Made by a program: the position numbers and the translations under genes. Under the pieces are notes generated by a model that ran no database searches, was not told the DNA's origin, and worked only from the letters and a program-made list of their open reading frames with translations. This document shows, piece by piece, positions 1,942 to 52,989 of a DNA stretch of 64,000 bases (positions within the stretch are counted from its first letter, which is position 1; each line of letters opens with the position of its first letter). The stretch spans positions 248,001 to 312,000 of the forward strand of contig JAKMXF010000199.1 of assembly GCA_024704765.1 (NCBI GenBank). The letters run 5' to 3'. The stretch is from Oopsacas minuta (Eukaryota > Animalia > Porifera).

Positions 1942-4890
1942 TGACAAAAACACAAATCTAAAGATAAAATATCAATATTTACAATATCAGAGATATATTA
2001 CAGAATAAGTAATTCATGGGCCTTGTAAATTGTAACTAGGGAGCATGGGCCGATAGTATGACGTGTATGACATAGGTCAAGGTCGTATACCAGGCGAATT
2101 AGGTTGATATCCAACACCAAAGACAAGATTTAGAGCTGTGAAGAACTGTAAAGAGACTGAAGCTATATCAAACTCTACTTACACATTTATCATGCTATAA
2201 TAGTCATGAAATGGTGACTTAGGATAAATTTGGAACTAGATTATAGAGTTCGAATAATCTTTAGGAATCATTTTAGACAACAAGCTAAATTTATAATAAC
2301 ATCATCCAATGGATTAAGAACATTAGTACTACATTGAAGACTGAACTAAGTATTCACTATTTAATCAATTTGAGAGCGGATCATTAGGTTGATAAAAATC
2401 ATAGAGGATGATAGATTCATTTTCAGATTGATTTGGCACAATTTTCTAAGAAAACCTTAGGTTGAACTAATTTCGTAAAAGTGGTACAGGTTCACTTTTA
2501 CTAAGCGTAGCATAAGGGACTAAGGATTGTTAAGGGATAGTTCTAGCTTATCTTGATTCTTGCTCCAGGGGGTATCTCAAGATGATAAAATAATTGGAGG
2601 GTTCCCATCACTTCCCTCTGAGTTGTACATAATGACGTAATATATACTATTCCATATTTAGTGACGTAATCTCAATCATCGTAGTCCTTCAGAATATATT
2701 CGAATTCTTTGATACTAAGACTCTCAGAATTTAATCGTTGCAGCTATCACTTAAAGGATATATCAAATTATATTGAAAATTATCATATAATTTGTAAGGA
2801 ATCTCGAATCTCCTTTTCGAGGCATCAAACTTGGGGCTATGGTTATCTCAAAAACTATTCAGTATTTTGTTATAAAATGTATTATTGTCACATAGAAAGT
2901 TGTATATGTAGGGCCCAGTTTTGTTGCCAAGTTTGGAAATGTCCAGGATTTGTCCAGTGTCCTGTTTTTGTCCAGTGTTTTTATTTTGTCCAGGTAGTTG
3001 TTTTTCAGAATTATTAGGTTAATGTTCGGGCTTGTCGATTTTGGAGTGTGTTCATCCAATCAATATTATATTCTGTTACAATTTCAATAATAGATATACG
3101 CTGTCGAGACCACTATCTAATTTTTATATTAATGGTTGGTGAAGGAAATCCAGTTGGCTAAAAATAGCTAGTAGCACATTTATTCAAGTATGAGTATGAC
3201 TTGACACTCCAACTTAGATAAGCTTAGTGTAGCATGCTACAAAACATGCAAATACTGATAATTATGCACATAATTAGGACACGGTTCACAATACAGTAGA
3301 TAACTTTTAATTTATCTCGTTCATAATTGTTATTGTTTACTTTTTAGCAAACTTAAATAGTGAAAACGAGTTTGTTGCCGTCTCAAAGATCAGATTATCA
3401 TAGTGTGAATTCATACCTCAAACTTATTGAAAATATTACCAAAATCAATCAAATGTTTCAAAACATTTTATGTACTTCTCTTGGAAATCATGCTTTAGAG
3501 CAAATATACAGTAGGTCATTATTGCGAATTACTAGTATTAGGGATTTACGCGTTTTATTTTAGAGATAGGCTTATAAAATACATTATTACTGCATAGTAA
3601 GTTGACTATTGCGGTTCTTTTGTTGATTTAATTTGTTGTATCACATCAGGTTTTCAATATACGTCGTAATCTTAATTACCATATACAATAATACAGAAAT
3701 CTAGATATACACTAAACTGAGTTTTATTAGAAGAAATAGAATATGAATATATTATGGCTATGGTAACTGAAGAATAGCTAACATACGAATATCTTATTGA
3801 TGAATTAATGTTAAATACAAGAAGAGTTCATCTATGGAATTTTGAAGGAGAGAATCTTCATTATCAATATTATTAGTGACGTTTTCACCTTGCCTGTTTT
3901 TAACATAATTATTTTGATGGCCTACTTGACCACAGGTGGAACAAATGATGATCTTTCTGAACTTTTCAATCAGAATTAGACAACCATAGATGTAGAGCCT
4001 CATTGCAACATCACTTAACCCACTTAGAAAATCTGATTTCCTGCTCAAATGTGTGTTGAGAACTCACGGATCAACTTATGTCCTTGTTCTAACCCTTCTT
4101 CAGAAAGACTACACAATCATATCCTGTCATTTCTTTCAATGACTTGATAGATATGAACCAAGAATTTGTGGAGTGTAATGCTAATAGATACCCAGGGAAA
4201 GGTTTATAAGATTAGTATGTGGGTTTCTTGACTTAACACACGAAATCTGTCTTATCGACAACTTCATTACTATTAGCAACTATGAGTAATACAGATAGAT
4301 TCCTATGAATCTCTGCCAGAGCATCTCTATAAACAAAGCGATCCTAAAACACGAGTTTGTATATGAAAAAAATGTTCTTGCCATGTTATCAGTGCTTGTG
4401 TTCCCACTTCCTCCTGGTTGGTCGAATAATAAGTTTGTAAGCTCATGGATACGCTTGCATACTAAACCTCGATAATCTCGCACCATTTGATCTTCAATCC
4501 ACCTGGACTTTGCTGCTGCAATTCGGTAGATGAGGTTCAAAACCAATCTAAAATCCTTAGGTAAGAATGTAAAGGTGCTGCAGGAAATACATCAATGCCA
4601 CTTGCAGGTTTGTGTGTAATCCCACACCGTGCTTTGTATTGTAGCTCATCAGTTTTTTTTCATCAGAGGTTAATTGACGGATTGTCTCTTTGATATCCTC
4701 TATCGAATAATCTAAAGGAAACCCACAGACAACTTTCGTAATACCATTGAAATCACTTCGGGTTGCTTTACAGGCAATACATGGCGCTCCTCCTTTACCT
4801 GTCATTGTTGCTAACGTTTTTCCGTCAAACATTGAAGCTTTGACTTCTACTTTAACATGGCCATTTAGGTGATCAAAACATTCTCATTTA

Positions 4891-7226
4891 CACGTTTTTT
4901 TTTTTATAAGGAACCCTAATTCAAACTTCAGGCTGAAGTTCCTTATTTTTTTTGCCAATTTCAGCCTCAAAGTTCCTTATCGGTTCCTTATTTTCTCGGC
5001 TCGAAATATTGCTTAGTAAGAAGGTACCTACGTATTCAATTACTTAATTAACTGATTATTAACATTTTAACATTGTAAAGTGTGTATTTAGCTTTTACAT
5101 GTGTGCTAACAGACAGCCAACACTTGGCAGTTTTGGATTTATAAAACGCGTTAGACACCGTGGGGTATGGAACGAAATCATTCTACCTGACATTTCAGAA
5201 CAGCCCAAATTGGAATGTCCCCACTGTGATAACAAATTCAAAAATCAACAAGGATTGACGGTACACCTAAAATGTACACACGGTAACATTTCAGAAAGTA
5301 CCAATGTCGAAATAAACAACGTCCCACTTACTAGTAGTATAGCTGAAATCGAACATGTTTCGAACGTTGATTCAGAAGAACTACAGCTAGGAGTATTTGA
5401 AGCGCAAGATATTTCAATTGAGCCACCTGCTAAAAGATCCCGTGGTCAAGATAGTAGACGGCAGTATAATTCAGTGTTCAAAGCGAAAATTGTTTCAAAT
5501 CTTGAAGCAGGAGTATCACCCAAGGTACTAGCTCAGAAACATGCTATCAGCAAATCAATGTTATCTATGTGGCGCTTGAACAAGGGAAAGATAATGTTGG
5601 CGGCTTCAAATGACCACAAGAAACTCTTGAAAATCAGACCTTCGACAAAATACGCGGAATTATATAGGGATCTAAGGAAGGTTTTCCTAGAAGCTCGTAG
5701 TAAAGGACACCGAGTTGATTTCAACTGGATATGGTCAAAAGCTAGAATTCTATACAGGCAGAAAACGAACGATCCAAATGCCATCGTAAGGAAGCATGTA
5801 ATCGTGAACTTTATCAAACGAAATGATTTAAGATTACGCTCCCGCCAGAGAAATCGTAAGTTAAGCAAGGAGAACTTTCGTCTCCCGATGCAACAATGGC
5901 ATGCTACTACCAGAGAGCGGTTGATAAGGACAGGATGTGCAGACTCTTATAACTCCAAATGGGGTAGGTATGCACCGGAGCAGCGATTTAATGTTGATCA
6001 ATCTCCTTGTCCCTTTGTCATTAATACAAAGAAAACATATGAAATGTTAGAAAAGAAAAACCCAAACAATCGTGAACATAAAGTTTGGATATCCCAACCT
6101 GGAAGTGGCTTGGACAAACGTCAGTGCACTCTCCAAATCTGTTTTCGGCCAACTGGGAAGCAGCCTCGAGTTGCAATTATATTCAATGGAAAGGGAAAAA
6201 GGATAAGTGAGGATGAAAAAAATGCATGGCACCCAGATGTTGATGTGTATTTTCAAGAAAACGCATGGGCAGATACCGCATTTTCTGTCGAATGGGTAAA
6301 ACGTACCCTCTCCCCCATAGTTCAACATAGTATTGATCGTTTTGTCTTATTTTGCGACAATTTATCAGCCCAGATATCTGACGAATTTAAGAAATCTGTT
6401 TCAGATTTAAATGGCGTTTGCTGGTATGGATTACCTAATGCAACTGACATCTGGCAACCGGTAGATGCTGGATATGCTGAATTACTGAAAGTTTTCCTAA
6501 ACCAAAAGCATCATGAGTGGCTTGACTGCGATGGCAATGCCACCAAGTGGTATGAAAGCACGCAAAGTTTTAGGAGGAAAGAGCGGTGGATTTTACTTAC
6601 TCATTGGGTCGGTGAAGGATATAAAAAATTGATAAGTTCGCAATACGATTCATTCAGATTGCGGATATGGCAAAAGACTGGTTGTCTCATGACCGCTGAT
6701 GGTACTGAGGATCACCTAGTGCAACCAGAAGGATTACCTGGCTACAATATTCCTCCTCCCTCTATGATTGACCCGGACACTGTGACTCCAGGCATGCAAA
6801 ACCCAGAACCAAATGAAAATGTAGATATTCAATCCGAGAAAGAAAGTCTTCTAATTGATAATGATGATGAGCGTGAAGAATTTGAGGATAATATAGCTGA
6901 TAGGATTTTTCACCATGAACTCGTTGGAAAACAAGTTAAAGGGTTATATGAAAATGGGTGGTTTATTGGAAAGATCCAATATTTTAACAGTAGGCTTGAT
7001 GAGTTTAAAGTAGTATTTGAAGATGATTCAATTGATTATATATCAAAGGAAGATATAGACGATGTTGAAATATTCTTGATAAATTAATAAATGATACTAT
7101 GATAGGTATATTATTTATGGGTTTTATAATCTCAGGCTGGGCAGTTCCTTAAGAGTTCCTTAATTTTTTGCCAATTCTCAGCCTGGAGTTCCTTATAAAG
7201 GTGTTCCTTATAAAAAAAACAACGTG
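4891..7226 (+). mobile_element. Full-length pogo-superfamily DNA transposon (2336 bp)
   Basis: 24-bp TIRs CACGTT(T/G)TTTTTTTTATAAGGAAC with 1 mismatch; TA on both sides (4889-90, 7227-28); subterminal GTTCCTTA repeats; single intact ORF. Confidence 0.95.
5099..7087 (+). CDS. Intact pogo-type DD35D transposase, 662 aa, with N-terminal C2H2 finger and C-terminal Tudor-like domain
   Basis: CPHCDNKFKNQQGLTVHLKCTH (C2H2); RRQYNSVFKAKIV... (psq-like HTH); CENP-B-type HTH; triad FNVDQ / LFCDN / WQPVD with 35 residues between D2 and D3; acidic linker; ELVGKQVKGLYENGWFIGKIQYF...FKVVFEDDSIDY (Tudor-like). Confidence 0.92.
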   Translation: MCANRQPTLGSFGFIKRVRHRGVWNEIILPDISEQPKLECPHCDNKFKNQQGLTVHLKCTHGNISESTNVEINNVPLTSSIAEIEHVSNVDSEELQLGVFEAQDISIEPPAKRSRGQDSRRQYNSVFKAKIVSNLEAGVSPKVLAQKHAISKSMLSMWRLNKGKIMLAASNDHKKLLKIRPSTKYAELYRDLRKVFLEARSKGHRVDFNWIWSKARILYRQKTNDPNAIVRKHVIVNFIKRNDLRLRSRQRNRKLSKENFRLPMQQWHATTRERLIRTGCADSYNSKWGRYAPEQRFNVDQSPCPFVINTKKTYEMLEKKNPNNREHKVWISQPGSGLDKRQCTLQICFRPTGKQPRVAIIFNGKGKRISEDEKNAWHPDVDVYFQENAWADTAFSVEWVKRTLSPIVQHSIDRFVLFCDNLSAQISDEFKKSVSDLNGVCWYGLPNATDIWQPVDAGYAELLKVFLNQKHHEWLDCDGNATKWYESTQSFRRKERWILLTHWVGEGYKKLISSQYDSFRLRIWQKTGCLMTADGTEDHLVQPEGLPGYNIPPPSMIDPDTVTPGMQNPEPNENVDIQSEKESLLIDNDDEREEFEDNIADRIFHHELVGKQVKGLYENGWFIGKIQYFNSRLDEFKVVFEDDSIDYISKEDIDDVEIFLIN

Positions 7227-9543
7227 TAGTGAAACAAGACAATAACCCAGGAGATGAATGAGATCCAAAACCATCCAGTCCATGCTTGATTTTGAGTGTT
7301 AATAGATAGAAGTGTGGTGCAGGAAAATTTAGCACACATTCTTTTAACTACCGGTCAAAGAGAGAAATTACATGTGATGAGTAAGATATACAGACCCTAT
7401 AGGATTGGAAACATTAGGATACCAGTCAAATGTTGGAACATTGATTTTCTAATTTCACTGATTTTTTCCCAAGTTGCCAAAACGAGGCCTTCTGATTGGA
7501 GATAATATCTAAGATCTCCCCCATTTTCCTTTCCCCAACTTAACTTGATATGCTAAGAATGTTGATTTTTCTGGTGAAACTATGTTACTGAGGGTTGGTA
7601 TCGATTCTTCGTTATAGATTTTCCAAGCGATATTTGCGATGCCTTTAAAACCAATTTGTTCTACAGCTACAATATACAAGAGGAGAGCAGCGTAGCGAAT
7701 AACAGAAATATTTTCAAGTTGTGATAACTGACGGATGGAAGTAAGTATTCAGGTCTGATCAAGCCTTATCTTCTTTGAACGAACTTGAATGTCATCAATT
7801 GATTTTCTCCTCTCTACATTTGGAACCAATATAACACCGCTTTCTACATCACAGCCTGAGACAGAAGGAAATGATTGGGTTCGCTTAGGTTTAACAGGGA
7901 TCCATGGAATACTTGCACTCCACCACTCACCATTTAAGCTCTCAATAGATTTCTTACTCTTTCTGAAATTATACCATACTTTAGACATTAGAGAGGATAG
8001 AGAATGTCTCTTGTCTTCCTCGAGATTTAGTATACGCACCACTTTATCGCTGCTTCATTGATATCATAGTCGTGAACCTTCAATATGATAGCCAAGTCCA
8101 TACGTGTTTGCGGGCTTTCAGATACTATTGTTGTTTCAGCCATCTTTAAATTGATAATTAGAGGTTTAATGGGTTATCAAATTAATGAACATGTATACTA
8201 CCGCGTAATATGCAGTGTATATATATATAATTATTGCGTTATATTGGTGTAAGATTACAATGGAATTACATTGCATTGTACCATAGCAACGTAGATGTGA
8301 GAATGGAATTTGACAAAGTTTAATATGTTGCGCCATGAAGCGGCATTTGTAGTTTGAATATAATGTTTTATTACTTGACAAGAATACATACTAAAAATTC
8401 AGGGTGGAAACTAGTGGAAAAAAATTTTGCTGTCAACAGGATGGCTTATGGCCGAGAGAAATTTCTACAAATTTTTCACAGTATTGTATACGTAATATCT
8501 GATTAATCTTTTAGCTCTTGAAGAAATTCAATGATAGATTCAAATTCAGCGCACTCACTTTGCTGGAAAAGCAAGTAAATGAACAATGGTATGCATCATA
8601 AATTCAACAGATTACTGAAATAGCTTCAGTCATTTATATAATGGAGGTATATAACATAGAATACAGCAATGAAGTTCTACATTTGATTGACAACAAAAAT
8701 AGAAATATTTAACTGTTTCATCTGATACTTTACATATCGTTCGTTGAATATATCTAGAATCTAATCCCTAATTTAAAATGGTAAAAATGGAATGTAAGAA
8801 TTTGGGCCTAATGCACCCTAGTAGCCCACTGTGCAAATAAAATCTTAATCCTGGATAAGTAGCTTAAAGTCTTCAGATCTAATTCATTGTTTATTATCCA
8901 TTCATACTCAAAACTATTGGGTTATTGCCTTGATATCAATCAAATATATTCTTTGTTTTTTTATGATGCATTTAGGATTTCAAGTAATATTAACAAGTAT
9001 AATTCAATCTTAACTAACTCACTTGCATAGTACTTAATTAGAAATTTGGGATCAGATATAGAAAAATATTCCACTGAAATCTTCAGAAACTTTTCTAAAA
9101 TTCCATTGGGTAGTTACATCGAAACTGCCACTGGATAGTTATCTAATGAGATTCAATTGTAGAGTTTTGAAGAAATTTTTTGGGCATATATTAGTGGTTT
9201 TGTGGAAATTGTTTTTGACATTCAAATTGATAGTTTTGTCGTTTGGTTTACAAACATGCCATTGAAAAAGAAGGTTATAACTGTGTGGTGTATATATTAT
9301 AGGTCGCCAAATATTTTTCATTTCTAGCTCACTTCTAGACACGGATTATCGAATCATTTTCCTCTGAATCTATTTGAAATCGAATGCTGAGAGAATTAAA
9401 TGGAGGTGCAATTATTGTAACTCAGCCTTGGGATTCACAAATTAAACTACCTCGCTAAATGATACTTGAATTATTTTGATATTGACAATGTTTCATCCGA
9501 AATTGTGGTTACTATAGGATCTAGGGAGAGGATGTCATAATTC

Positions 9544-28744: not shown

Positions 28745-30124
28745 TTATTGCAGAACAAGACCAACGTTATCAGTTGCAATATTTTCACAGCACCAATTAT
28801 AGAAAAAATATTGTAAGTTTCCATCTCCCATTCCAAATTTCAAATCCTCCAATACACTTTTATTTTCCATAATATCAAGTGCATTAAATACATCGAAGTT
28901 ATTTGATTTGGCAAGAATGAGTGCATCATAAAGCAAATCCTGAAAGAGAGTTCTTGTTGTAAAATAATAAAATAAATATGCTGTATATAAGTGTTTATGC
29001 TTTGGATGACGAATTACAGAAGAAGGAATCGAATAAAAACTTATCATATCAGTGATAGGTTCAGAAGGAGTAGGCTGAACTACCCATGAATAAATTATTC
29101 CTTCATGGGGAGTTAACCAATGGGATATATCCGTTTCAGTGAATTTAGGGCATAACTCGAACCTTGATAAATATAGATTTAATCCATCACACACTGCCTT
29201 AGAATCAGATAATTTGAATTTTCGAAGTCCAGGTGTAATTGGTTTTTCAGGGAGTTTGTATAACTTTAAAGCTCTTTGTAAAGTCATATTACGTGTCAAG
29301 TAAGAGAATTCAACTTCGATCAATTTCTTAGGATTTAGTGAACGATGCCAATATCTACAAACTGCTACAGGACGATTTGGCAATTTAGCACCCGAAGTAA
29401 AAACAGCTTGAAATATCCCTTTGAGATTGACGCGCCTAGTTATCTCTCGAATTAACACAGGGGCGACTCTCTTATTTCTCAACTTTTCATGGACACATAG
29501 GAAATTTATCTCAACCATTTGCTTCAATTTACCTTTAACAAATATCTGCGCAGGTACGGCACTAATAAATGCAACTAACTTATGGCTAGTTTTAACTCTA
29601 ACTCCACAGTGAAATTCTGATAGCCAACCAGGTGGTTTCAGTGCCCATATAAGAAACTGTTTTGAATAAGCAAAACGAAACATATGATCGTCATCTTCAA
29701 CATAGTTTTCACATAATAATTCGTAAAGTTCTTGAATCTCACAGTCAAGTGTTAGATCAAGTTCAGACCATTCAAAAGACGAGGAAAGCGTAAAAGGTTG
29801 CTCGCGTATTGCTATAGAATCTTGTATAATTGGTGAATTTAATTCAGAAAGTTCATTGTTTGAATTCAAAAGGATTGGTTGTGAACCCCAAAATTTGTGT
29901 ATGGATTCAGGATTCTCAGATTGAGAGATATTAACGCTATCATGCGATAAATTTTTGGCACTCCTTAAATCGGTAATCTCTGGCATTATTTTACTAGGAT
30001 ACATTCCCTCAATTTGTGTTTGCTGATTTTTAGGATCAATAGCTAGTGAAACAGATTTCTTAGAACCTGAACCTGAAAGGTCATTTTGAGATTGTGACAC
30101 AAAAGATGATGGTTGTCCTTCCAT
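28745..30124 (-). CDS. NMT1: Glycylpeptide N-tetradecanoyltransferase (N-myristoyltransferase), intronless, 459 aa
   Basis: HKFWGSQP, LCENYVEDDDHMFRFAYS, VEINFLCVHEKLRNKRVAPVLIREITRR, CRYWHRSLNPKKL, FDVFNALD, KFGMGDGNLQYFFYNW and C-terminal GLVLQ. NMT1 and NMT2 cannot be distinguished. Confidence 0.97.
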   Translation of the reverse strand: MEGQPSSFVSQSQNDLSGSGSKKSVSLAIDPKNQQTQIEGMYPSKIMPEITDLRSAKNLSHDSVNISQSENPESIHKFWGSQPILLNSNNELSELNSPIIQDSIAIREQPFTLSSSFEWSELDLTLDCEIQELYELLCENYVEDDDHMFRFAYSKQFLIWALKPPGWLSEFHCGVRVKTSHKLVAFISAVPAQIFVKGKLKQMVEINFLCVHEKLRNKRVAPVLIREITRRVNLKGIFQAVFTSGAKLPNRPVAVCRYWHRSLNPKKLIEVEFSYLTRNMTLQRALKLYKLPEKPITPGLRKFKLSDSKAVCDGLNLYLSRFELCPKFTETDISHWLTPHEGIIYSWVVQPTPSEPITDMISFYSIPSSVIRHPKHKHLYTAYLFYYFTTRTLFQDLLYDALILAKSNNFDVFNALDIMENKSVLEDLKFGMGDGNLQYFFYNWCCENIATDNVGLVLQ

Positions 30125-34572: not shown

Positions 34573-37500
34573 CGTGACCTACGTTGTAATAAGGCCTGTT
34601 CACTAGTGCGATTTTTTGGACCGTGGATGTCGTTTAAGTCCATTAAATTTTACTTCAAATAATCATGTATTTGATGTTATTCACCCAAATCGTGAACTTA
34701 AAAATTGTTCTTAGGCGATTTTAAAGACCATGGATGTCGTTGAAGGCTTGTGAAAAGTATTTCTTAGAAACCCATAACATTTATATTAATTTATGAATCA
34801 ACCTTTTTGTTACATTCAATTTATTGAAACAATACATTTACGTACTCACTACCCGTTCTACCTTGTCCTCTTGTACTTTTATCCAAGTTGTTTAGACAAT
34901 TTAGCTTTTATCTCTGTAATGCCGCTCTCCACCCTGTTCTGTCAGTTATGTGCATTTCTTTAATCTACCTCTCGATTTCTCCTTTTTACACTTTCAATTA
35001 GCTTGTCATGCCCAACAGGTGTTCTGCCCCCGGATGTCGTAGTAATTACGCAGGAGAACCTTATACTCCAGTATTTAAGTTGCCAAATGGTCCACCTGAT
35101 CTTGTCAATCGTTGGCTTCGAGCGCTCTGTAGAGAAGGTATCAGAGACTTAAAGAATGTGTTTGTGTGCTCAAAACATTTCCTCGACGAAGAAATTCAGA
35201 CCAGTTTTTCTATCCATCAACCAGATGGAACATACTTAGAAGTGCCAGCTAAGCCTAAATTGCAGAAGGATGCAGTGCCAAGATTTCTACCTTGGATGTC
35301 CACTTCATCTCTCTTCGTCATCTGACACCATACCTCCGAGATTTGATAGATCTTTGAGAGAACAGCATTTGATTGATACTGCAATAAATGAGAGTCTATT
35401 ACAGTATAACCAAGACAAAGAACTTTTTCAGATTACCACACTGGAATACTTGGCATCCAAAACGAAGCACTCGGGTTTGCCTAATCATTGGTTAGTTTGG
35501 TCTTCTGATGATAATTCCTTTAATTTACTCAAACCTTCTATAACGAATAACAATTTGATTGCAATTAGATGCTCGTTAACTATTACCGAAACATTACATA
35601 CTATGGGTTTCTACGAAGGTATACGCATTCCTCTTTCTCTCACTCAGATAAATGATATTCGTCAACTTAACGATTTGCTTAAAGAAATTGAAAACCATTC
35701 TGCCCCTACTAATTCTCCTGAAACATTCCAACACCATGTCAGAGAAGCAACCGGAAGCATTCGTAAAGCTATTGACTCCCTTTTAACTGGAGAAGAATCT
35801 GGAAACCAACAGCCTCTATTATCAAGTCTTCAGTTTATTCTATGCCAATTGGATAACGCTTTGATCGCGAAAACTATGAGGCGATACAACATCGAAACTC
35901 TTGTCTTGTCCCTCAAATGCCAGCTTATCTCGCCAGTTTGTTATAGATATCTTCAATCTCTGGACTGTCTATCATTGCCGCACCTTTCTACTCTAAAGCG
36001 CTTATATTCCAATTTTGGTTTGGATTCTGAGTTTACCAACTATCTCAAACAATCAGTCACTCAGTTTAACAAATGGGAACGAAATGTAGTGATTCAGATG
36101 GATGAAATTCATGTAAAATCCACATTTACATACAAAGGAGGTAAGATAATTGGATCTTCTTTGAATCCTACTGATCCTGCAAAAACCGTTTTTGCCTTCA
36201 TGATATCAAGTTTGTCCAGTATTGTCCGTTTATTGCCCTGTTCCAGCTCATCTGCTGAGGTACTCTTTCCTATCATCAAAGATGTTATTCGTGATGTTGA
36301 AGCATGTGGACTCTCTGTACACGTTTTATGTACAGATAATTACCCGATGAACGTTAACATTTTCAAGTTATTTTCTCCCAGCCGACTTCTAGAGCATATT
36401 GTTCCTCACCCTATGGACTCAAACCGGCCATTGTTTTTTGCTTTTTGACTTCGTTCATATAATCAAATCGATACGTAATAACTGGCTAAACCAAATAGAT
36501 TATAATAAAACATTCACTTATCCAGATTTTGAGAACATACAAGTTGCGAGCACTGCAGTTTTCGAAGAAATTCGCAAATTATATAAAAGTGACCAACACT
36601 CTGTTGCTAAATTAGCTCTAAGATTAACCTCTAAAGCTTGTTGGCCTTCCACTTTAGAACGACAAAATGTTTCTTTAGCTTTAAGGATATTTGATGAATC
36701 TACAGCCGCTGCATTAAACGTTAGCTACCAATCGCGATACCACACTTCTACAAATTCACAGACTACAGACTTTATTGCCATTATTTGTAATGTTTGGAAG
36801 CTATTCAACATCAATACTCCGAACAAGGGTATCCTTCACAAAGATGAATTTTCAGTTCCACTTACCTACAATGATATCAGATTTATGTTCCTTCAACGTG
36901 TAGTTGATTGGGCTGAATGTTGGCGAGTCATGCCTGACAAAAGAGGTAAATTAAGTCCTCAAACCTTTACAAGTTTCCGTCACTCTTGTATTGCACTCCC
37001 GTGCATTGTAAACCATCTGACTGGAAATTGTGGCTATTCGTACGTCCTTTCTTCGTTCTTGCAAAATGATCCACTTGAGCATCATTTTGGCTTGTATAGG
37101 ATGATGTCAGGAGCACAATGCCACATTAGCTATTGCCAGGTCCTTGAAACAGAACGGAGAATAAAGTTGTCCAGCATACTCAAATTATTTTCGAAAAAGC
37201 CTGTAGAAGATAGCATATCACTTAAGAACTTCTTAGAATCATGCTCATCCTCTTGTGACCAAGACTCCCATGCGTCTTTTAGCTTGGAGATGTATCTCTC
37301 GGCGATTCAGGGATATTCAGGGATAGAATTAAACAAGCAAATACTCCAATCACTCTCCTTTATAGCAGGCCACTCAGTGCATGCCTATTACAAACATTCT
37401 ACTAAATGTCAATCATGTCACTTATTCCTCACTGAAAACAAAGAAATGGAAATTGAAGAACCTTCAGATTCTGAATATCGATTAATTCAGATAATCGACC

Positions 37501-38186
37501 GAGGCTCACTAAAATGGCCAAGTAGTGATGTCATAGATGCAATTATTACGCTATGGAAAGTATTCTCTTCTATCGAGAGTCAATCAAGCATATTCAATAA
37601 CTTTATAACCGGCCCTTCTAGGAGTATCCTGATACAGTTAACAACAAGTCTTATAGAAGATGAACAAGCTGAAGTATGGAGAGTGCTGTGTGACGAATGT
37701 GGTACACTCATGTGGGATGTATTAGCTAAACTATTGACTGCTACTTCAAACTGTCTTATATCAAATAAGATTAAGAACATGAATTCCCAGCTACCCTTGA
37801 AACCGTGAGTCGAAAATACTCGAAAATTAAAGAAATTGAAGCCTAATTAACTTATCACATACCACTTTAATATACGTATCTTTTATTATTCTGTACTATT
37901 ATCAGGCACTCACTATTTGAAATATGCTCAGTATTAAACCCAATAATATTTATCTCATGGATTCACATTTTAGTTAATTTTCTCTAACTATAACATTTAT
38001 TGTAAAAATAAGGACTTAAATGCATCCATGGTCTTCAAAATCGCTTAAGAACAATTTTCAAGTTCACGATTTGGGTGAATAACATCAAATACATGATTAT
38101 TTGAAGTAAAATTTAATGGACTTAAACGACATCCATGGTCCAAAAAATCGCACTAGTGAACAGGCCTTATTATAACGTAGGTCACG
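34573..38186 (+). mobile_element. P-superfamily (THAP) transposon with 164-bp TIRs, 3614 bp
   Basis: 34573-34736 versus 38023-38186 inverted, about 5 mismatches; termini CGTGACCTACG. Possible degenerate 7-bp TSD AATGAAT/ACTGAAG (5/7). Confidence 0.9.
35008..37808 (+). pseudogene. THAP-domain P-like transposase, about 930 aa, two frameshifts, no introns
   Basis: THAP C2CH (MPNRCSAPGC..W..VCSKHF..AVP); IQMDEIHVK; CTDNY; FDFVHIIKSIRNNW; LQNDPLEHHFG; RGSLKWPS. Frameshifts at about 35290 and in the T-run at about 36434-36439. Confidence 0.9.
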
Positions 38187-51876: not shown

Positions 51877-52949
51877 ATGGACAGTAATAGCTCAACTCTC
51901 ACTCTGCTTGTAGATTCTCCTATTCTCAAAATCGATTCATTGTTTCCTGTTCCAGTGGCCCAGGTGCTATTTTGCGGGAATTCTCTCCTTAAGTCAAGGA
52001 TATATAACGTTTTTCCTGGTGAAAACATTATAGGTCGTGATCGTTCCTCACATATTTTCTTACCATCTCTCCATTTATCTCGATTTCATGCTTCACTCTA
52101 TTTTCAATCTGGTTTCGGATTTTTATCAGATTGTAACTCCCACAATGGTACTTATAGAACAAATCTCCGCCTTACTCCGCGATTTCAATATGAATTATTC
52201 GATGGGACAGAATTTAAACTGGGAGACTTGTTGTTCATTTATCGATATCCTATACCTGATGGGAGTTTTAGTAATGTTTCGGAAACATCTTATTCAACTC
52301 AACAATCTCTCAATACCCCTTCTCTCACATTAATTCCTCGGGTTACGCATGATAGTAGCAATGGTTCGCTTCACGATTTGGAACAAAAAAGTAAGGATAA
52401 TAATGAAAATACTCTTCTCACTCTGAATACTGAAAAATCTATCGATATATATGATTCGCAAACCAATAATTCTCATATCTTTTCTATTCCCAAACTACTA
52501 GATCAGGATATTTGTGTACCAAGTAATCTTAAGCACTCCTTCCAAAAGATATTTAAGGATTCAAATTTCATAACTGAAACAGATCAAGTCGTTGCTGCTG
52601 ATAAACAATATGAATGCTCGTCTCTTAATGATGAGTATGTCAATAGTCATTCAAAGATACAAACCACGCATGATATTTTATCATTACAATATGATTTATC
52701 TTCTATGGATGATGTATTACCCGTGAATAGTGGTGTTGAACCGCCTTTTATTATTTTCACGTACATTATCGCAGATACTTATTCCAAATGTGTTGCTGAC
52801 CTCGGTGGCGTGATTACTGATGATGTCTACAAAGCAACACACCTTATTACTGACAGAGTCCGCCGAACAATTAAGTTTTTGTCCTGCCTTACTCGTGGGT
52901 GTGAGATAGTCTCTATTAATTGGCTACTTAAATCCAAAGATGCAGGGAA
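51877..52949 (+). CDS. MDC1: MDC1-like protein, exon 1 (FHA, linker, BRCT1)
   Basis: FHA: IIGRDRSS..LSRFHA..DCNSHNGT. BRCT1: IIFT..LGG..ATHLITDRVRRTIKFL..GCEIVSINWL, matching the MDC1 SHLVTDRIRRTVKFL motif. Phase-2 donor GTAAGT at 52950. Confidence 0.88.
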
Positions 52950-52989
52950 GTAAGTTATGTACTATTCTGGTCTAAAAGTTAGTAATCTT

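Follow-up and report, generated by a model that had tools for sequence, protein, structure and literature searches.

Can a cut-and-paste transposase carry its own chromatin reader, and would such a domain influence where the element lands? The question is raised by a pogo element in the glass sponge Oopsacas minuta, which occupies 2,336 bp (4891–7226) of a 64-kb stretch of genomic DNA (contig JAKMXF010000199.1, positions 248,001 to 312,000 of the forward strand; hereafter the window, in whose numbering coordinates are given) and holds a single open reading frame (ORF). A preliminary description of this window had proposed that the transposase ends in a Tudor-like domain and may target chromatin through it. 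We find that the C-terminus models and aligns as a genuine Tudor-fold barrel with conserved predicted cage positions, and that this domain belongs to a whole sponge and cnidarian pogo lineage. Its most likely role, which we hold at about even confidence and by analogy with known readers, is to dock on a methylated histone lysine and bias insertion; we infer both the ligand and the targeting.

Domain architecture of the transposase

The product of the ORF is identical to an O. minuta protein record in GenBank that is annotated as a hypothetical or C2H2-domain protein. Its features, in order along the plus strand, are:

5099–7087 (+), transposase ORF of 662 residues, uninterrupted, the longest ORF in the window
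5108–5284 (+), N-terminal folded module, residues 4–62; AlphaFold2 (AF2) predicted local distance difference test (pLDDT) about 90
5216–5281 (+), C2H2 finger C40, C43, H56, H61; weak Pfam C2H2 match, and profile match to solved C2H2 fingers at E 1e-3
5456–5833 (+), paired helix-turn-helix (HTH) of CENP-B/Brinker type, residues about 120–245; from the family profile against the PDB and AF2 helices
5867–6688 (+), DDE_1 catalytic core, residues about 257–530; Pfam DDE_1 at 32.4 bits, cut-off 22
5996–5998, 6356–6358 and 6464–6466 (+), catalytic triad D300, D420 and D456; DD35D, with 35 residues between D420 and D456
6677–6766 (+), post-catalytic motif K-T-G-C-L..T-A-D-G...P-E-G-L..Y..P-P-P, residues 527–556
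6776–6898 (+), acidic, mostly disordered linker, residues about 560–600; pLDDT below 50 for 574–592, 19% mean identity
6920–7081 (+), C-terminal Tudor domain, residues 608–661, a predicted five-stranded barrel; AF2, Foldseek, VIA and Pfam

The uninterrupted reading frame, the C2H2 finger, the DD35D spacing and the C-terminal peptide at 6917–7065 (residues 607–655) thus all stand as first described. A full-length AF2 model (99 sequences, pLDDT 85.4) is disordered at residues 65–108, folds the HTH pair at 125–241 and a core that extends to about 530, is disordered again in the acidic stretch 574–592, and ends in a barrel at 612–661; the structural matches of the whole model include the Mos1, Sleeping Beauty and SETMAR transposases, as well as retroviral integrases. 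Searched against the PDB, a 22-member family profile finds the CENP-B DNA-binding domain (1HLV) at E 6.7e-6 over both HTH motifs, followed by Brinker at 1.3e-3, while Pfam matches of the window protein to HTH_Tnp_1 and PTM_DIR17_Tudor are weak. D300 and D420 are invariant among relatives, and D456 is at least 90% conserved. On the basis of the DDE_1 score above cut-off, the DD35D triad, the CENP-B match, the Mos1, Sleeping Beauty and SETMAR fold, and the terminal inverted repeats (TIRs) with flanking TA described below, we assign the element to the pogo superfamily of the IS630-Tc1-mariner group, with a presumptive cut-and-paste mode. The post-catalytic motif is the most conserved stretch of the family (67% mean pairwise identity over 13 full-length members), and it served as the pogo marker when Tudor-bearing proteins and the C-termini of relatives were classified.

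The N-terminal module is predicted to comprise a Q-x-T-L-x-x-F-G-F motif, a short helix, two strands and the C2H2 helix, and both the motif and the finger recur family-wide. The N-terminal motif (residues 6–14, 5114–5140) resembles a PCNA-binding PIP (PCNA-interacting protein) box, which Drosophila pogo has. We consider this reading doubtful, since position 8 is a non-aromatic Gly and the motif is part of the folded zinc-finger module in the AF2 model, again with pLDDT about 90.

The C-terminus is predicted to be a Tudor barrel

An AF2 model of residues 592–662, built on an alignment of 47 C-terminal pieces, is a five-stranded Tudor barrel with pLDDT 92.9 and a predicted template modeling (TM) score of 0.79, in agreement with the Tudor-like pattern first read from the sequence. 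Foldseek matches in the PDB are nearly all Tudor domains, among them PHF1, PHF19, MTF2, RDM15, Spindlin, PHF20, 53BP1 and the ADCP1 Agenet domain, with E about 6e-3 (usual for 55 residues), probability 1.00 and target-normalized TM-scores of 0.64–0.76. The best VIA match is the RDM15 Tudor domain (7de9_A; Z 7.6, root-mean-square deviation 2.1 Å, 54 of 58 residues), where Z below 8 may reflect a common arrangement and is by itself not decisive. Among the 47 relatives, 35 match Pfam PTM_DIR17_Tudor (PF21743) at E < 0.01, the best at 3.3e-7, and other C-terminal pieces match the MORC2 chromo-like domain, the JMJD2A Tudor or Agenet; in the PDB, the family profile likewise picks up Agenet proteins, RDM15 and JMJD2A, though with weak E-values. 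The nearest structures in the ESM Atlas are PTM_DIR17_Tudor clusters, plant PDS5, and PWWP+Tudor, SET and ENT proteins.

A copia-type RVT_2 cluster of 881-residue proteins (84 members) is found in the Atlas as well, and 62% of its members carry PTM_DIR17_Tudor; another class of transposable element (TE) has therefore acquired this type of Tudor.

Predicted aromatic cage

We mapped the cage by a HMMER alignment to 7de9, whose register at the start agrees with that of the structural alignment, took the roles of RDM15 residues in H3K4me1 reading from PMC8184781, and counted column conservation over the 47 relatives. The correspondences are:

RDM15 W616 to Y617; Tyr in 47 of 47
RDM15 Y623 to F622; aromatic (Phe, His or Tyr) in 35 of 47
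RDM15 Y641 to F640; Phe or Tyr in 47 of 47
RDM15 D643 to D642; Asp in 45 of 47
RDM15 D645 to S644; Ser or Thr in 39 of 47
RDM15 E647 to D646; Asp in 46 of 47

The aromatic cage that the preliminary description had suggested looking for is thus predicted from the alignment (Y617, F622, F640 and D642), and its positions, three aromatics and an Asp two residues past the third, are conserved across the 47 relatives to the extent listed; W621, Y628 and N630 are also near-invariant. In 53BP1, an Asp two residues past the third aromatic holds the lower methyl-lysine states, and because the same Asp is present here we suggest, with low confidence, a preference for mono- or di-methyl-lysine.

RDM15, a PDS5C-type H3K4me1 reader of Arabidopsis (PDB 7DE9), is the best match by both structure and profile, and the transposase has conserved equivalents of its three aromatic cage positions, of the Asp two past the third and of the acidic residue holding H3R2. 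The two differ in that identity is 11–13%, the second cage Asp of RDM15 (D645) is Ser or Thr in the transposase, the first turn of RDM15 is longer by two inserted residues, and RDM15 is a host chromatin and RNA-directed DNA methylation factor, not a transposase. The H3K36me3 readers PHF1, PHF19 and MTF2 are the top Foldseek matches (24–29% identity, target-normalized TM-scores of 0.64–0.66), but the PHF1 cage has four aromatics, the fourth of which would, by the shared register, align with an Asp in the window protein. In the SMN Tudor domain the fourth cage aromatic lies three residues past the third, which corresponds to column 643 here. This column is Gly, Asp or Ser in relatives, and with no conserved aromatic at this position we judge SMN-type methyl-arginine reading to be less likely.

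A barrel of this size could instead serve in nucleic-acid binding or transpososome assembly, like the SH3-like C-terminal domain of retroviral integrase, contacting target DNA, donor DNA or another transposase subunit and raising efficiency without chromatin specificity. The whole model does align to two- and three-domain retroviral integrases, in which a small barrel follows the core, and TraI, Spt5 KOW, the PcrA Tudor and a myosin SH3-like domain, which are non-reader barrels, match at Z 5.7–6.7, within about 1–2 Z units of the best Tudor and, like it, in the range where a shared arrangement may suffice. Several features point the other way: the sequence signals are those of methyl-lysine readers (PF21743, Agenet, JMJD2A Tudor, RDM15), the conserved columns are the cage columns and not a basic DNA-binding surface, the acidic character of the domain and its linker disfavors DNA binding, and the nearest Atlas neighbors are chromatin proteins. 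We therefore give this alternative a minor share of the probability, and regard methyl-lysine reading as the better account of the barrel.

Conservation, gain and loss of the Tudor domain

A word-index search returned 124 relatives, including a Nematostella protein annotated as "C2H2-type domain-containing protein" and "jerky-like" proteins of Hydra, and cluster look-ups added relatives from Montipora, Rhopilema and Sanderia. Many lie on contigs of repeat length (2–3.5 kb) whose ends carry a related TIR motif; one 3,014-bp contig (L003) is bounded on both sides by a TIR-like TTATAAGAAC motif, and TIRs were not detected at Nematostella locus L002. The Tudor is present in 46 of the 81 relatives with a complete C-terminus. 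Neither it nor the C2H2 finger is an "extra" of the window protein, as first described; both are standing features of the whole cnidarian and sponge lineage. Mean pairwise identity over 13 full-length members is 44% in the Tudor, compared to 40% in the HTH pair, 31% in the zinc-finger module, 55% in the catalytic core and 9–19% in the linkers. Since the Tudor is as well conserved as the HTH pair and far better than the linkers, it is under purifying selection within the transposon lineage, and on this evidence it must help the transposon.

A word-index search with residues 600–662 alone gave one candidate and no match. An exhaustive search of 1.84 billion representatives with the Tudor profile returned 651 proteins at E ≤ 1e-3, 273 of them at E ≤ 1e-10, the top matches being mostly short C-terminal fragments; in 48 of the matches the Tudor is preceded by 75 or more residues, and 30 of these 48 have the post-catalytic motif of pogo; among the others are C2H2+Tudor, HTH+Tudor and multi-Tudor proteins. 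P0186, P0260, P0141, P0243, P0154 and P0167 combine the same Tudor subtype with C2H2 fingers or an HTH and have no DDE_1 core; such proteins are possibly deletion derivatives or domesticated genes.

In a quick maximum-likelihood tree of the core (tails excluded, root insecure), Tudor-bearing members occupy early and late branches and Tudor-less members fall into several nested clades, including Hydra, with at least seven changes of Tudor state, six of them forced by starred branches. The tree reads most simply as an early gain of the Tudor followed by repeated loss. Many Tudor-less members end in a short conserved acidic N-I-F-D-I-like peptide that aligns just before the barrel of Tudor-bearing members. 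This peptide could be left over from truncation or act as an alternative docking motif. Such tails are seen in P0008, P0011, P0013, P0033–P0040, P0044, P0049, P0059 and others.

The ligands of Tudor domains as a class also include methyl-arginine and methyl-lysine outside histones, and the domain could bind a methylated host protein other than a histone, such as a repair, replication or small-RNA factor, and regulate the transposase (its timing, gap repair or escape from silencing) rather than its choice of target. Repeated loss fits an accessory, host-dependent role of this kind, and the acidic peptide of the Tudor-less relatives looks like a protein-docking motif. On the other hand, the domain is one minimal Tudor that lacks the SN-like extension found in Tudors of the piRNA pathway, the fourth cage aromatic of SMN has no conserved counterpart, and the Asp matches RDM15 and 53BP1, both readers of histone methyl-lysine. 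We rate this alternative as improbable, on a par with the assembly domain, and continue to favor a histone ligand.

Element structure and recent mobility

The boundaries and ends of the element are as follows:

4889–4890, TA target-site duplication, 5'; TA lies directly beyond both TIRs, here and in three further copies whose flanks are unrelated
4891–4914 (+), 5' terminal inverted repeat, 24 nt; two matches in the 64 kb
4907–4990, 5' subterminal cluster of four GTTCCTTA octamers, one of them inverted inside the TIR, from the octamer count
7144–7210, 3' subterminal cluster of four GTTCCTTA octamers, from the octamer count
7203–7226 (−), 3' terminal inverted repeat; one mismatch to the 5' end
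7227–7228, TA target-site duplication, 3'; by direct reading and from the copies

The TA-flanked element with nearly perfect TIRs that was first reported is thus borne out. The inverted ends, 24 nt with one mismatch, begin with CACG, and their pattern is found only at 4891–4914 and 7203–7226, with none expected from shuffled sequence. The GTTCCTTA octamer occurs nine times in the window (2.3 expected), eight of these within about 100 bp of the element ends, four at each, and the octamers are probably binding sites for the transposase.

The contigs of four sequencing runs were compared over 3400–8700. The run from organism A covers the element and its flanks, and we take it to be O. minuta because one of its loose ends equals the flank of L004, a second genomic copy. 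In the other runs, X5, X6 and X9 (organisms B, C and D), contigs break or change exactly at 4888/4889 and cover only 4889–7228, at about 97–99% identity, with other sequence beyond both ends, and the element boundaries are therefore fixed independently; this could point to closely related organisms or to horizontal transfer. In organism C, depth at the element ends greatly exceeds that of the interior and many joints skip 1.9–2.2 kb, which look like MITE-like (miniature inverted-repeat transposable element) deletion derivatives. No RNA run holding the element was found among the runs searched.

A count of genomic copies, which the preliminary description had suggested, gives two more full-length O. 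minuta copies, L004 and L005, at 99.70% and 99.74% identity to the window copy, each with TA on both sides and unrelated flanks. L004 is broken by a 2-bp deletion at codons 313–314 and L005 by a stop at codon 542, ahead of the Tudor. A further copy from another assembly (L001, 97% identical) has TA flanks and has lost the D420..D456 region through an internal deletion of 219 bp. All three share the ends of the window copy; TA thus flanks four independent copies, of which the window copy is the only intact one. Since copies that are 99.7% identical carry their own TA flanks at unrelated sites, the family was active very recently. The window copy itself differs from the others at four private sites:

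5277 (+), K60T
6574 (+), S492R
6587 (+), R497W; T here, C in other copies; Arg at least 90% conserved in 22 relatives
6618 (+), A507G

All four are non-synonymous, and every run that covers the region, as well as the other copies, reads the other letter. The copy is therefore intact, as first described, in the sense of an uninterrupted ORF, but it is not wild type; similarly, the suggestion that the element may still be active fits the very recent movement of the family, but this copy has R497W and both full-length sister copies are broken.

These data bear on whether the ORF might be a domesticated host gene encoding a pogo-derived C2H2/Tudor chromatin protein, as the GenBank label could suggest and as the existence elsewhere of the same Tudor type with C2H2 fingers and no DDE_1 would allow. 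The TIRs, TA duplications and subterminal repeats are all present, at least three full-length O. minuta copies that are 99.7% identical lie at different loci with two of them broken, internally deleted derivatives exist, and relatives sit on 2–3.5-kb contigs of repeat length with a related TIR motif at their ends. Domestication is already contradicted by these data and is extremely improbable; the ORF is best read as that of a transposon.

Genomic surroundings

Both flanks of the window copy (4280–4832 on the minus strand, and 7229–8700) are themselves repetitive in O. minuta, where contig depth over them is high and variant contigs are numerous, and no ORF crosses the empty site once the element is removed; the copy is nested in decayed repeats. 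THAP and rve ORFs likewise adjoin L004. Other long ORFs in the window are:

28745–30124 (−), N-myristoyltransferase, complete ORF; NMT and NMT_C, E about 1e-67
35270–37808 (+), P-element/THAP9-like transposase, with a TNP-like RNase H N-terminal domain and a GTP-binding insertion domain
51877–52953 (+), FHA and BRCT protein resembling an NBS1/RTT107-type repair factor

The N-myristoyltransferase and the FHA and BRCT protein are host genes interspersed with repeats. The P-element-like transposase is split over two overlapping ORFs and is thus frameshifted, and another long ORF is a Tc1-like HTH fragment. With no other intact transposase among these, the pogo element is the only one in the window, as previously stated.

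A proposed model for chromatin-guided insertion

We propose that the CENP-B-type HTH pair recognizes the element ends, probably assisted by the N-terminal C2H2 module and the GTTCCTTA repeats, and that the DDD core, with its RNase-H-like fold, would excise the element and insert it at TA. The single Tudor, on its flexible acidic C-terminal linker, would then dock the transposase or transpososome onto a methylated histone-tail lysine, probably in a lower methylation state, and this docking would bias the landing site; the Tudor would be to this transposase what the chromodomain is to chromoviral integrases. A broader and more tentative proposal, to which we give somewhat over a third of our confidence, is that a sponge and cnidarian pogo lineage has carried its own methyl-lysine-reading Tudor since near its origin, steering integration to a particular chromatin state, and that the acidic peptide of the Tudor-less sisters may provide a tether via a host protein.

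A number of observations weigh against this model. The window protein scores below the PF21743 gathering cut-off of 27.2 (16.8 bits for the whole protein, 21.9 for the domain alone), and its domain thus seems a related but divergent subtype; the cage geometry is supported at present by alignment, and 12 of 47 relatives have Ala or some other non-aromatic residue at the F622 column. Small barrels of this type also bind DNA, RNA polymerase and other proteins, with TraI, KOW, the PcrA Tudor and the integrase C-terminal domain among the structural matches. In the window copy, a near-invariant Arg is replaced by Trp (R497W). Four insertion sites are too few for any target preference, and two of the three O. 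minuta sites lie among other repeats, which provides no evidence for targeting. Finally, because the Tudor has been lost repeatedly it is dispensable for transposition itself; the contrary outcome envisaged in the preliminary description, a domain both routine and dispensable for target choice, is thus half borne out, in that the domain is routine in this lineage.

Relation to known elements

The element resembles Passer (Gao et al. 2020, PMC7386202; Wang et al. 2023, PMC9976928) in its DD35D triad, TIRs shorter than 30 bp, TA duplication, single ORF and occurrence in sponges and cnidarians. Passer transposases, however, are 400–500 residues long and are described as having Brk and HTH_Tnp_Tc5 domains, a nuclear localization signal and DD35D only (PMC9976928), whereas the O. 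minuta protein has 662 residues, an N-terminal C2H2 module and a C-terminal Tudor. Pfam does not find HTH_Tnp_Tc5 in the window protein; among 22 relatives, four have a BrkDBD match and four a CENP-B_N match. Of the named Atlas clusters, those closest to the core are POGK-like (BrkDBD) and oomycete DDE_1. According to the pogo classification literature, DD35D is also typical of Fot and Fot-like elements and not exclusive to Passer. The early hint at Passer or Fot thus fits the triad but not the length and domains of described Passer transposases, and a Passer assignment is only a lead. In the accessible part of the Gao et al. table, the Nematostella, Hydra and Amphimedon entries differ from this element, those of Nematostella and Amphimedon having 459–625 residues, DD30/31/34/35D and other TIRs (PMC7386202).

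No Tudor is described in two 2020 pogo classifications or in the 2023 Passer paper (PMC9976928), where the word occurs only as an author name, and we found no report of a pogo or any other DNA transposase with a Tudor in the literature searched. The closest functional parallel is provided by chromoviruses, Ty3/gypsy elements with a C-terminal integrase chromodomain, which likewise join a mobile-element enzyme to a C-terminal royal-family methyl-lysine reader; the MAGGY chromodomain directs integration to H3K9me chromatin (cited in bioRxiv 10.1101/2021.11.30.470311). Fusions of readers to TEs have mainly been found with Chromo and PHD domains, examples being hAT-Chromo from a sponge and cnidarian fusions with Chromo and PHD, with pogo/Tc1 unmentioned (Grau-Bové et al., bioRxiv 10.1101/2021.11.30.470311). 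The present case differs in that the reader is a Tudor and not a chromodomain or PHD finger, and the enzyme is a pogo DDD cut-and-paste transposase. Gypsy-10_Ec32 of Ectocarpus also has a C-terminal Tudor and is, to its authors' knowledge, the first TE reported with one (PMC12477816, 2025); it is a stramenopile long terminal repeat (LTR) retrotransposon as opposed to an animal DNA transposon, and the two Tudor gains are independent.

Implications

Target choice by cut-and-paste elements has so far been explained mostly by DNA sequence and accessibility, and built-in chromatin readers are known mainly from the chromodomains of LTR retrotransposons and from scattered Chromo and PHD fusions, so that a conserved Tudor kept by selection on a pogo transposase is a new combination of reader and enzyme. 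If the proposed reading is correct, the element would provide the first case of a Tudor reader on a DNA transposase, and the Tudor-bearing and Tudor-less branches would form a natural with-and-without experiment on chromatin-guided transposition. Because both types of branch are represented in animals for which good genomes and chromatin maps exist (Nematostella, Hydra and corals), the targeting hypothesis is directly testable. Passer-type pogo transposases are in development as gene-delivery tools, and a natural chromatin tether on a related enzyme would be useful for steering integration. The finding also bears on the origin of the chromatin role of pogo-derived host proteins such as POGZ.

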